Shown one piece after another: positions 16,124-20,701 of a stretch of 64,000 nucleotides of DNA. The DNA comes from Selaginella moellendorffii. Lineage: Eukaryota; Plantae; Lycopodiophyta. Location of the stretch: assembly GCF_000143415.4 (NCBI RefSeq), contig NW_003314272.1:840184-904183 (forward strand). Direction: 5' to 3'. The notes under the pieces are model-generated. The model ran no database searches. It was given only the letters and a program-made list of their open reading frames with translations, and had not been told where the DNA came from. Position numbers and translations under genes: made by a program. Within the stretch, counting starts at the first letter, position 1; the number at the start of each line of letters is the position of its first letter.

Positions 16124-17635
16124 TTAGGGTTCTTGCATTGGGGAGCGCCATTCTTTCGATCCTATCAACTGGATCCCAGTCGGTACGTCTTGGCAGCTGC
16201 GTACATTGGGCTCGAATCTTGGATCGCTGCGGCGCTTGCAATCGCATCCGTACGGCGCCGCGGCGTGGAAGCAGGGATCCATGGAAATCAGCCTGGAGCA
16301 ATTGGCGGTGGCGCCGCGATCGTCATTGTCAGCGAGGAGGAGCCACGGTTTGATCCCGGCCAGGCCCTGGGCGACGTACCCAAACGTGGATCCGGGGCTG
16401 GTGACGAGCTCGTCACACATCGACAGCAGTACCATCTCCGCCAGCGCCTTCTCGTCGTGCTCCAAGTTGTCTGTCCTCTGCGATTCTTCGTGGCCTGGGG
16501 AGAGAACTCTCACGACTCCATCCGATTCCAGGGAGAAATTTCGTAGCCTCTGGAAGAAGAACCGATCCAGCGATGTCACGAGCGCCGTGGTCTTCGATCT
16601 GGATCTGTTCGAGGGGAGATCAAAGAGGCTGTTTTGGAGGAGGCACTGGATCATCGCTTGGGCGAAGCTGGATTGCGAGTGCGGTCGCAGGCCCAGATTG
16701 GGCGCGAGCTGGCGCATCTGGATCCCGATCAGCTTGCTCGAGTCCGCCATGGAGGCTTTGTAGAATCTGGAAGCTTGATCCCACACGGAGTTGGATGGTG
16801 AGAACAAGTAGCGCCCAAGGTGGTGGAACACGACGGTCTCTTGCTCCGCCGGGAAGAGACAATCGAGCTCGGCCTTGAATCGCGGCACCGCGTACAAGCT
16901 GGGAGCGTAGTACTGGCTACTCCGGATCGACAGCCACGCCACTCGATCGCCCAGCGCGCGCTGCTGCCGCTCGCAGAAGAAATTCTCGCCCAGGCTTGTC
17001 TCGCTGATGATGTCGATGGAGAGGTGGCTGCCGAGCACCCGATCGAGATCGTCGGCGCAGAAGCGATGATCGAACTTGGGCTTGGGATCGCCGAGCGCGA
17101 ATTTGTTGAGGATCTCCCGCGAGACTAGCCAGGAGCTGCGAGGGAATGGCTCACAGAAGAGATTTGCCATGTCCTCGCCGGGATCGATGAGGAGCACCCT
17201 GTCCGTGAGGAGCGCGTAGAGGAAAGTGGCGGCGATGGACACCATCTTGTTGCCAAGGCCGCTGAAGTTGATCCACACCACGAATTTGCACTCGCTAGTC
17301 GTGAGATTCCCGCGGCGATCCCAGGATTGGGGATGATTTGGAGCGCAGCGCGCGTGGAGATCTTCGTACGAGCGCAGTCTTCTCGCGAGGCTTGTAGATG
17401 GGATGTTGCGATCGATCGCGGCTGCACGGTAGTATAGGTGCCGCTGGAGCCGGCTCTGGCATCGATCGTTCTCCCGGATGGGCAGCAATCCATGCAGCGA
17501 TTCTCTATCGCGAGAAGCTCTCGAGGAGGAGAAGTAACAAATTCCTTTGGCTACCTCCCAGATCCGAAACTCTAGAACCAGCAAGTAGATAGAAATCGCG
17601 AGAATTCCCGGCACTAGCATTTTCGTCGCGCCCAT
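16124..17635 (-). CDS. GT37 xyloglucan/galactoside 2-alpha-L-fucosyltransferase (FUT1-like), intronless
   Basis: N-terminal TM anchor; CKFVVWINFSGLGNK; FLYALLTDRVLLID; VFHHLGRYLF; IGIQMR; ALAEMVLLS..LVTSPGSTFGYVAQGLAG; SMDPCFH. The start codon is uncertain. Confidence 0.92.
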   Translation of the reverse strand: MGATKMLVPGILAISIYLLVLEFRIWEVAKGICYFSSSRASRDRESLHGLLPIRENDRCQSRLQRHLYYRAAAIDRNIPSTSLARRLRSYEDLHARCAPNHPQSWDRRGNLTTSECKFVVWINFSGLGNKMVSIAATFLYALLTDRVLLIDPGEDMANLFCEPFPRSSWLVSREILNKFALGDPKPKFDHRFCADDLDRVLGSHLSIDIISETSLGENFFCERQQRALGDRVAWLSIRSSQYYAPSLYAVPRFKAELDCLFPAEQETVVFHHLGRYLFSPSNSVWDQASRFYKASMADSSKLIGIQMRQLAPNLGLRPHSQSSFAQAMIQCLLQNSLFDLPSNRSRSKTTALVTSLDRFFFQRLRNFSLESDGVVRVLSPGHEESQRTDNLEHDEKALAEMVLLSMCDELVTSPGSTFGYVAQGLAGIKPWLLLADNDDRGATANCSRLISMDPCFHAAAPYGCDCKRRSDPRFEPNVRSCQDVPTGIQLIGSKEWRSPMQEP

Positions 17636-17922
17636 CCGGCCCAAAGTTTGGTGATCTCCAAACTCCCGAAGTTTGAAATTCCAAAGCAACGAATATTCTC
17701 TGATTTGTGCCAGGGTACGGAGACCCCATGCCGTCCGTACGTCTCCGAGCTCTCAGGAGCTATGCTGTGCCTCTACGCTAGGGTTTGTGGCAGCGCAGCG
17801 AAGATCCGGGGCGCTCTCCACATCGGTACGTCTTTCAAGCTGCGGGGATCCCGAGCTCCATTCTCCGCGGCGATCGCCTGATCCGGACGGAGCGGCGCGA
17901 GAGATCGGAGGGGAGCGACAAG

Positions 17923-19399
17923 ATGGACAAGGTCGCGGGATGGGTTGGAGGAAGCCTGGCGTCGGCATTCTTCGCGTCGCTGGAGCGATCGTCGTGCGTG
18001 ACCTTGTCGACCACGGACACGGACGACGAGGAGGATGTGCCGCTCGAGGTCCGGGTGGATACCGGGCACCAGAGCAGCGCGTCCTGCGCGGATCATCAGG
18101 GCTACAAGCTGGGGCTCGTCGGCCACGACAAGTTCGTGAGGAGCAATCCCATGTCCGATCGCTTCGGTGTTCTTGGCTTCCACCACGTCGAGTTTTGGTG
18201 TGGCGACGCCTCCAACACCTGGCGGCGATTCGCGTGGGGGCTGGGGATGCATCTGGTGGCCAAGTCGGATCACAGCACAGGGAATCACACGTACTGCAGC
18301 TACGTGATCAGCTCCCGTGAGCTCGTCTTCGCCTTCACTGCTCCTTACTCGTCCAAGAAGGCCGACCAGGAGCTCAGCCAGATGCCACACCCGGGCTTCT
18401 CATCGAGCGACGCACGGCGGTTCTTTTCCATGCACGGGCTGGCGGTGCGAGCGGTGGGGCTCCTGGTGGAGGATGCGGAGGAGGCTTTCCGGAAGAGTGT
18501 TCTTGGCGGAGCTCTGGCGGTGTTTCAGCCCCAGGAGCTCGCGGACGAGGCCACCGGTGCGAAGGCTGTGATATCAGAGGTGAAGCTGCTCGGGGACGTG
18601 GTGCTGAGATACGTAAGCTTGAAGGGATTCTCGGGAGCTTTCTTGCCGAATTACACGCCGGTGGAGAGCCTCCCGCTCACTTCCGGGTTTGTGAGGCTCA
18701 GCTACGTTGCGGCGAATGTTTACAACCTTCTCGACACCGTCAACCACATTGTCAAGTTTACGGGATTCCACGAGGTGGCCGAGTATACGACGGACGACGT
18801 TGGGACCAAAGACAGCGGCTTGAACACCATGGCTCTTGCGAGCAACAACGAGACGGTTGTTTTTTCGCTGAGTGAGCCGACTTACGGGACCAAGCGCCAG
18901 TCGCCCATTCAGACTTACCTGGAGCAGAATGAAGGCTCAGGGATCCAGCGCTTGGCTCTTCAGTGCGACGACATTTTTGGGACTGTGAATGATATCCGTG
19001 ATAGGATCGATGCTGGTGGCTTTGAGTTCTTGCCAGCTCCTGGTCCCGAGTATTATGATTCCATGCGCGGAAAGGTTGGCAGCGTTTTGACTGAAGAGCA
19101 GATACTTAAATGCCAAGAGCTCGGTATTTGGATCGACAAGGACGAGCACGGCATTCTCTTACAAATATTTACCAAGCCCGTAGGAGATAGGTACGTGTGT
19201 CGTATTTCCTTGGCACGACCTAAGTTGTTTTCTACGCAGGCCCACCCTGTTTCTAGAGATCATCCAGCGTTTTACTTCGATCGAAAGCCAGAGTTTTCAG
19301 GCGGACAAGTTCGATGTTGTTGGGAAGGATAACTTTTCGGCACTGTACCGATGCTTGGAAGAGTATGAGAAGACTCTGGATGCAACACGGCAGATTTAG
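17923..19399 (+). CDS. 4-hydroxyphenylpyruvate dioxygenase-like protein, predicted non-catalytic, with an extra N-terminal domain; intron 19191-19239
   Basis: FVRSNPMSDRF, FHHVEFWCGDA, AKSDHSTGN, FAFTAPYS, HGLAVRAV, IQTYLEQNEG, LLQIFTKPVGDR|PTLFLEIIQR, GKDNFSAL..EEYEKTL. A 49-nt GT-AG intron restores the frame. Confidence 0.9.
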
Positions 19400-19851
19400 C
19401 AATGTAACTTACTGGTTCGTCGACAAGCAGCAATGAGCTACTCAAGTAAACGCTGTGCATCCCCTTGGACGTTGGGTAGGATCGTTTGATTGGGAGGAGT
19501 ATTTCAAACTTAAATGCGGGGGTGGCAGTTCAGCGCGAATGAGCAGATGCAAATATGTGTTACGAAATTGAATCAGATGGTAATGTGGGATGTGGGAAGA
19601 ACAATCAGAAAAAAAGAAAAGAAAAGAAGGAAAGTCCTCTACGGAACTACGCAAGAAGAGAACTCAAGGACTGTGCGGGGGAAACTCATCTCGTACATTT
19701 AGCCATTTTTCTTCTTCATTCATCGGCGATGACTTGAAACGTTGGAGAACGAGTATCAACACGATAGTAGCTACTGCGCGACAAAAAAATTCACGAATAA
19801 TTTGGAACTTGAGCAGCGGCAGGCTGGGACGTAAAACCAATCGGTTTTCGT

Positions 19852-20648
19852 TCATGCTTTGATCTTCTTGGGAGCTGCTTGGTTGTCCAAGACGACGTAG
19901 CTTCCACACCTGGGACAGTGTGGATTCTTCGGGGACAGCATGACGTACATGAGGCAGCTCTTGCATCCGGTCACTATAATTCCAGACGAGGAGCAGTCGT
20001 CGCAAGAAGAGGTCCGTTTGTGGTCCAAGTTGGTCCCCTCGGCGGCCAGTTTTGATGAAGAAGAAACAGCTGCTAGATTGCGTGGAGAAGTCGGCTTGCA
20101 TCCTAAATTCAGTTCCAGGTCCAGGTGCTCTTCCAAGGTGGAAGTCGGGCTGTTGTTTTTCGCGTGGTGAGCTTTGACGGAGGTGGCTCGGCTGCTGTTG
20201 CTCTGGAGGAGATCGAGGCAGAGAGACGAGCTCCGATTCAACGAGCCGGACTGTAGGAGCCGGGGATCGTCAATGGTGCTCAAACCGGTGCTACAGTTGA
20301 CGAAAGTTATGGAGCCAGACTGCGGCAAGAGAAGAACTTTCAGCCAAGAGAAAGGAAGAGGAATGGACAGCAATGAGTTCTTGGTACCTTCAAGTCGAGG
20401 CGCTTCTCCCATCCGGTTGGAAGCGGTGGCTCTTTTTCGTGATCCAGATGGACAGTCTCCGAGGATTGGCACGGACGGATTGCTGGCGGAAGCGGTCCCG
20501 AGCTGTCGACCGGCTTTCCCATCATCAGGCTGAGGATCTTCTGGGGGTCCTCGCTCCAGGCGTGTGGCTCCTTGGCACTTGTCGTCTTGATCGAGCTTGT
20601 GCACAATTCAGCAGCCTGCCAGCCCAGCTCCATTGTTGCAACTGTCAT
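19852..20648 (-). CDS. CFL1 (CURLY FLAG LEAF 1)-like WW-domain protein with EAR motif and C-terminal Cys-rich ribbon; intron 20320-20387
   Basis: PLPTGWEKRLDLK|SGSITFVNCSTGLSTIDDPR (WW-like); LDLELNL; TGCKSCLMYVML..PHCPRCG. Confidence 0.85.
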
Positions 20649-20701
20649 CCGGAAGTGGAAGAATACGAGGCGAAGAGGTGGAAGGAAAGATGGGATAGGA
20701 C

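Follow-up and report, generated by a model that had tools for sequence, protein, structure and literature searches.

Two paralogues of 4-hydroxyphenylpyruvate dioxygenase (HPPD), the bacterial hydroxymandelate synthase (PDB 2r5v) and the animal protein HPDL, have moved away from the homogentisate reaction on the same fold; both keep the 2-His-1-Glu iron site and are still oxygenases. In bleomycin-resistance proteins, which are single-module dimers not derived from HPPD, the barrel of the vicinal oxygen chelate (VOC) type serves as a metal-free binding module. HPPD itself stands at the entry to tocopherols and plastoquinone and is a major target of herbicides and drugs. Here we describe SELMODRAFT_91092, a gene of the lycophyte Selaginella moellendorffii, located in a window of 64,000 nucleotides of contig NW_003314272.1 (positions 840,184 to 904,183 of the forward strand; coordinates below are those of the window). 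Its product (XP_002968708, a 100% match to the translation of exon 1) carries the source name 4-hydroxyphenylpyruvate dioxygenase. A preliminary description of the locus had pointed to an HPPD homologue from which two of the three iron ligands are missing. The alignment, both haplotypes of the genome and RNA bear this out, and they do so for a gene that is intact and expressed.

In the substrate-bound structure of Arabidopsis HPPD (AtHPPD, whose numbering is used throughout), the facial triad consists of His226, His308 and Glu394 (PMC6750108). The residues of SELMODRAFT_91092 were placed by a phmmer alignment to this enzyme (PDB 1sp9, E 9e-116; 2r5v was also matched, E 1e-11) and by a MAFFT alignment. 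The stretch covered by the preliminary description (18690-19399) corresponds to the catalytic C-terminal domain. Within it, both His ligands had been read as replaced, one by Tyr and one by Arg, together with an Asn to Ser and a Gln to Pro exchange, a rewritten gate and a retained Glu; the alignment to AtHPPD confirmed every one of these (Table 1). At the columns of His226, Asn282 and His308, the residues His, Asn and His are found in 119 out of 119 other top homologues, which stem from green algae, oomycetes and land plants. The catalytic network Ser267-Asn282-Gln307-Gln293 reads Thr/Ser/Gln/Pro in SELMODRAFT_91092, that is, three of its four members are replaced. For AtHPPD, the loss of efficiency is ~12-fold in S267A, ~160-fold in N282A, ~99-fold in Q307A and ~3722-fold in Q293A (PMC6750108). 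Further changes relative to canonical HPPD are V228A, V269A, P280S, M335L and L368W. In the gate, Gly420, Lys421, Asn423 and Phe424 are retained, while Phe419 and the preceding CGG are altered, in a region of low model confidence. Judged by these residues, SELMODRAFT_91092 would not bind Fe(II) at the 2-His-1-Glu site and so would make no homogentisate. One near-invariant position is polymorphic: codon 326 (18898-18900), at Lys291, encodes Gln in this haplotype and the canonical Lys in the other.

The substitutions are not spread evenly over the protein. Among 104 near-invariant columns (conservation of at least 97% across 162 HPPDs), 17 are altered in SELMODRAFT_91092 versus none in SELMODRAFT_165961, which with SELMODRAFT_174278 represents the canonical HPPD of the same genome. 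All 17 lie between At225 and At428, so that the N-terminal domain has 0 of its 25 columns altered and the C-terminal domain 17 of its 79 (Fisher p 0.010). When the 16 pocket residues named in PMC6750108 were compared with the other conserved columns of the C-terminal domain, 9 of the former were altered versus 14 of the 77 latter (odds ratio 5.8, Fisher p 0.003). The clustering of changes in the active site that had been noticed at first sight thus has quantitative support.

Both haplotypes tell the same story. The product of the other haplotype (GL377675; L001:6001-7477) is identical at 468 of 475 residues, carries every listed active-site substitution and is encoded by an intact open reading frame. 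Logan contigs from four runs of four studies cover the gene from 17879 onwards, with the intron excised exactly. The RNA status of these runs is a tool's guess; we accepted the contigs as cDNA because they lack the introns of both SELMODRAFT_91092 and the neighbouring minus-strand gene. At the Tyr and Arg codons that take the place of the ligands, the RNA contigs of all four studies showed zero differences. Over its span of 17879-19188, the X13 contig differs at just two letters, 17917 and 18004. Six allele-distinguishing variants at 18541-18613 made up ~40-55% of the depth in three runs and, since this is about half, both alleles are seen in RNA. An artefact of sequencing or assembly is ruled out by the agreement of two independently assembled haplotypes with the RNA contigs. 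Editing of the transcript back to His is likewise excluded in the sampled RNA by the unchanged codons. We found no point in favour of either and regard both as practically impossible. Sequencing error and lack of expression, two of the objections that the preliminary description had raised against itself, thus fail, the latter because runs of all four studies contain spliced contigs.

The gene consists of two exons. The frame of about 475 codons and the canonical intron between DR and PT that had been read from the letters proved correct: there are 475 codons with no internal stop, and the GT..AG intron is spliced in RNA. Position and phase of this intron, which follows GDR, are the same in the canonical paralogue, and it is the single intron of both genes. 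In the NCBIfam equivalog family TIGR01263 the protein scores 278.2 bits and barely passes the cut-off of 277 (paralogue 339, Marchantia 355). AlphaFold2 (AF2) predicted the N-terminal domain with a local distance difference test score (pLDDT) of 94-99 and the C-terminal domain mostly with ~82-96, with local dips to 60-75; the gate and the C-terminal helix reached 46-69. In a Foldseek search, the AF2 model aligned to rice and Arabidopsis HPPD with template modelling (TM) scores of up to 0.94, the value for rice. By this model, both VOC barrels of the HPPD fold are kept, in line with the retention of the fold proposed earlier.

Comparison with the catalytic paralogue gave an unexpected result. 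In the N-terminal domain, SELMODRAFT_91092 is 74% identical to the HPPD of Diphasiastrum, whereas the catalytic paralogue reaches 65%; in the C-terminal domain the relation is reversed (55.5% versus 75%). Counted against the same reference, unique changes in the N-terminal domain number 15 in SELMODRAFT_91092 versus 31 in the catalytic paralogue (p 0.026), and those in the C-terminal domain 56 versus 15 (p 1e-6). The direction was the same with Marchantia, Ginkgo or a moss-like sequence as reference. The C-terminal domain of SELMODRAFT_91092 evolves 3-4 times faster than that of the paralogue, and its N-terminal domain evolves more slowly. That is, the non-catalytic half is better kept in SELMODRAFT_91092 than in the true enzyme, so that the good conservation of the N-terminal domain remarked upon in the preliminary description goes beyond that of the catalytic paralogue. 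Constraint on the two genes is complementary: SELMODRAFT_91092 keeps the N-terminal domain and an ancestral N-terminal motif, the paralogue keeps the catalytic domain.

This motif comprises residues 7-38 and reads WVGG..AFFASLE..SCV.LS.TD.DDEED. HPPDs from liverworts, mosses and Spirogloea, each of them catalytically canonical, have N-termini that align with it. The motif is absent from the catalytic Selaginella paralogue, which begins with a Ser/Thr-rich, acid-poor leader of transit-peptide composition; within 60 N-terminal residues it has 23 Ser and Thr and 2 Asp and Glu, whereas SELMODRAFT_91092 is acidic with 11 Asp and Glu. A profile of the motif retrieved 216 representative proteins at E<=1e-3, nearly all of them stand-alone proteins of 56-180 amino acids, and free-standing motif proteins reached E 1e-14. 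Those that carry names are microproteins of ferns, monocots and eudicots, none of them characterised (for example Ceratopteris KAH7283147 and Brachypodium XP_010231628). A Pfam scan assigned no family to the motif, and a feature search of the ESM Atlas with it gave only leads at the 0.80 level, to small streptophyte proteins. The motif shares its exon and its RNA contig with the HPPD body, so that its fusion to HPPD is real in SELMODRAFT_91092. The occurrence of fused and free forms suggests gene fission or fusion in the history of land plants.

Selection on the gene was estimated from its two alleles, which differ by 11 synonymous and 7 nonsynonymous changes. Per synonymous site (pS) this amounts to 0.033 and per nonsynonymous site (pN) to 0.0064, a pN/pS of 0.19, and the nonsynonymous count is low under neutrality (binomial p 6e-4). 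The alleles of canonical HPPD, analysed as a control, differ by 7 synonymous and 5 nonsynonymous changes (pN/pS 0.22). On these small counts, recent constraint on SELMODRAFT_91092 is the same as on canonical HPPD, and the ratio of nonsynonymous to synonymous substitution rates (dN/dS) near 1 that had been named as a mark of a recent pseudogene is not what the alleles show. Divergence from the paralogue is old, because pS between the two is 0.65 overall and the C-terminal half is saturated beyond correction. The stem branch of SELMODRAFT_91092 has a length of ~0.84-1.1 substitutions per site, and the frame is still intact in both haplotypes. With no stops or frameshifts, with expression and with this pN/pS, SELMODRAFT_91092 is not a decaying pseudogene. 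It is a probable pseudo-enzyme, a homologue without essential residues that is transcribed, spliced and, on a small sample, under purifying selection. Along its coding sequence, the GC content at third codon positions (GC3) declines: the first 180 codons have 0.83 and the last ~115 have 0.53-0.57, versus 0.72-0.98 throughout the canonical paralogue; relaxed constraint on the C-terminal half may be the cause.

Taken together, we think it rather probable that SELMODRAFT_91092 is a transcribed HPPD, maintained by selection though catalytically dead, and that its N-terminal half carries the retained role. Through an old duplication, an ancestral HPPD that bore the motif would have had its roles split. 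Catalysis would have passed to the other copy, probably directed to the plastid, and SELMODRAFT_91092, probably cytosolic, would have been kept for a non-catalytic role of the motif and the N-terminal domain, such as protein-protein contact or dimerisation; the dead barrel might then act as a scaffold or ligand-binding module. [quoted passage not shown] A role in contact or as a scaffold would fit this association. Going further back, the ancestral land-plant HPPD might have been bifunctional, that is, an enzyme joined to a module of motif and N-terminal domain that worked independently of homogentisate; Selaginella would have separated the two by duplication, and ferns and seed plants by a free microprotein. 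We put this forward tentatively, as a scenario that may well turn out otherwise.

Several points weigh against a maintained role in the N-terminal half. The selection estimate is based on 18 allelic differences only, and no long-term dN/dS is reported because dS to the paralogue is saturated and an orthologue is lacking. Word-index protein searches with the exon-1 protein, the canonical paralogue and a 173-aa catalytic piece returned no orthologue, the closest sequence to SELMODRAFT_91092 reaching <=66%; nor did these searches return any other protein with Tyr and Arg at the ligand sites. As a control, canonical Selaginella HPPD was also without a close orthologue in the databases (best 69%, Diphasiastrum). 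The databases hold no other Selaginella HPPDs, and the missing orthologue is therefore uninformative on the age or breadth of SELMODRAFT_91092. In the free tree, the two Selaginella paralogues are not sisters; forced sisterhood costs 5.5 log-likelihood units and is not rejected by the approximately unbiased (AU) test (p 0.25). Seven of the 16 pocket residues are retained (Glu394, Gln307, Gln379, Phe381, Phe392, Asn423 and Phe424), which could mean that the pocket still has some activity or role. It is from N-terminal composition alone that SELMODRAFT_91092 is assigned, as probable, to the cytosol and the paralogue to the plastid. The case so far is one species.

In the tree, both Selaginella HPPD genes have long stems and fall into a polytomy at the base of the land plants; it neither shows nor rejects a duplication specific to Selaginella and gives the duplication no date or placement. 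In a check for segmental duplication, tblastx between the two HPPD loci matched nothing beyond the HPPD bodies and PPR repeats of a generic kind. In the literature we found no paper on a plant HPPD pseudo-enzyme, on the Selaginella HPPD paralogues, on SELMODRAFT_91092 or on the motif. Further unusual HPPD copies were met in other sequences. An angiosperm-like metagenome contig of the Joint Genome Institute (L004:3431-5093) contains an HPPD-like exon 1 that is intact, retains both His ligands and carries N282S, Q293P, Q307H and F424I, with a second copy of exon 2 upstream, and a similar HPPD-like copy with frameshifts is present in L005. Degenerate or repurposed HPPD paralogues may, on these two examples, recur in plants.

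Other explanations differ in which half of the protein they take to matter. The remodelled C-terminal barrel could be a new, metal-independent site for ligand binding or catalysis that is itself under selection, which would be compatible with a retained role of the N-terminal half. The conserved residues of the pocket speak for such repurposing, as do the confident modelling of the C-terminal domain as a closed barrel, the specific nature of the replacements (His to Tyr, His to Arg and Leu368 to Trp, the same in both alleles) and, as a VOC precedent, metal-free binding by the bleomycin-resistance proteins. However, the domain as a whole is accelerated relative to the paralogue, the gate is rewritten and poorly modelled, the drop in GC3 in this half fits relaxation rather than new constraint, and the data point to no ligand. 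We therefore see a repurposed pocket as unlikely, albeit with a real chance. The preliminary description had favoured a regulator that forms heterodimers with true HPPD and tunes the flux into tocopherols and plastoquinone. Plant HPPDs are dimers whose N-terminal domain is associated with the interface (PMC13260116), this domain is the best-conserved part of SELMODRAFT_91092, and both genes reside in one genome. Yet the differing N-terminal signals make different compartments likely, and the N-terminal domain of the true paralogue is the more diverged one, a poor fit to a co-evolving interface. These two points somewhat disfavour heterodimer regulation and, on balance, make it improbable.

It might also be argued that the gene was recently inactivated and is transcribed without function on its way to a pseudogene. 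Its record from a single species, the acceleration and lower GC3 of the C-terminal domain and the narrow pass in TIGR01263 would agree with this. Against it stand the open reading frame, intact in both haplotypes despite the long stem, the pN/pS similar to that of the functional paralogue, and an N-terminal domain with no near-invariant column altered that evolves more slowly than in the true enzyme. Moreover, the number of near-invariant changes, 17, implies an ancient loss of the active site, yet no stop or frameshift has arisen since. A gene merely in decay is thus very improbable, and a dead HPPD kept for its N-terminal half remains our preferred explanation.

Table 1. Features of SELMODRAFT_91092 in window coordinates; residue equivalents in AtHPPD numbering.
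Feature	Position	Strand	Details
5' untranslated region	17879..17922	+	contigs of three RNA runs begin at 17879; transcript without upstream ATG
Coding sequence	17923..19190, 19240..19399	+	two exons
Exon 1	17923..19190	+	codons 1-422 and two bases of Arg423
N-terminal motif, residues 7-38	17941..18036	+	profile/alignment; predicted helix at residues 11-22
N-terminal VOC domain, ~residues 65-245	18115..18657	+	pLDDT 94-99; 0/25 near-invariant columns changed
C-terminal (formerly catalytic) VOC domain, first part, residues 250-423	18670..19190	+	phmmer, MAFFT, AF2
Tyr261 (TAC) at iron ligand His226	18703..18705	+	
Thr302 at Ser267, member of the catalytic hydrogen-bond network	18826..18828	+	
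Ser317 at Asn282, member of the catalytic hydrogen-bond network	18871..18873	+	
Pro328 at Gln293, switch residue	18904..18906	+	
Arg343 (CGC) at iron ligand His308; adjacent Gln342 (Gln307) retained	18949..18951	+	
Trp403 at pocket residue Leu368, bulky replacement	19129..19131	+	
Intron, 49 nt, GT..AG, phase 2, between GDR and PT	19191..19239	+	removed in RNA contigs of four runs
Exon 2	19240..19399	+	codons 423-475 and TAG stop
Glu429 (Glu394), sole retained member of the iron triad	19256..19258	+	
Gate KFDVVGKDNF in place of family GCGGFGKGNF	19307..19336	+	C416F, G417D, G418V, F419V
Stop codon TAG	19397..19399	+	
3' untranslated region	19400..20321	+	contigs continue into convergent minus-strand gene; exact 3' end undefined

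On either side of the gene lie neighbours on the opposite strand. Within 19400-20690, RNA contigs connect SELMODRAFT_91092, at its 3' end, with a convergent minus-strand gene (open reading frame 19852-20604, a Zn-ribbon protein of the GIR1 type, with the intron at 20320-20387 spliced). Since these contigs join both genes, their transcripts overlap tail to tail. The divergent upstream neighbour (16124-17689, minus strand) belongs to the xyloglucan fucosyltransferase family (PF03254 on the allelic locus L001) and was represented by low-depth RNA contigs only.

SELMODRAFT_91092 fails the defining catalytic features of HPPD and should not be filed as an active enzyme. Automatic annotation overcalls it: RefSeq and UniProt label it HPPD, and the TIGR01263 cut-off is passed by ~1 bit. 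In reconstructions of the lycophyte pathway, the enzyme should be represented by the other paralogue alone. The reciprocal constraint on the two genes in turn suggests that the N-terminal domain of HPPD and the N-terminal motif have a function independent of catalysis. If the ancestor was indeed bifunctional, SELMODRAFT_91092 would be a natural separation-of-function allele, and the role of the N-terminal half of HPPD and of the pan-plant microprotein would become directly testable.

How, then, does SELMODRAFT_91092 relate to known proteins? With canonical plant HPPD (EC 1.13.11.27) it shares the two-VOC fold and the residues Glu394, Gln307, Gln379, Phe381, Phe392, Lys421, Asn423 and Phe424, at ~50% identity to AtHPPD and 54-58% to the Selaginella paralogue, but it has the N-terminal motif where this paralogue has a leader resembling a transit peptide. 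A shift in function like that of hydroxymandelate synthase or HPDL is unlikely, because SELMODRAFT_91092 has lost the iron site that both of these keep. To the bleomycin-resistance proteins it shows no specific sequence relationship. The HPPDs of bryophytes (Marchantia polymorpha, Riccia fluitans and the moss-like sequences P0003, P0004 and P0007) align with it over the full length, including WVGG..AFF.SLE..SCV.LS.TD.DDE, at 59-62% identity; they retain all catalytic residues and are presumably active, whereas SELMODRAFT_91092 has lost several of these residues. With the plant microproteins that bear the (I/V)NLSTTD-acidic motif, finally, it has the ~35-residue motif in common, which in SELMODRAFT_91092 is joined to an HPPD body and in the microproteins stands without one.

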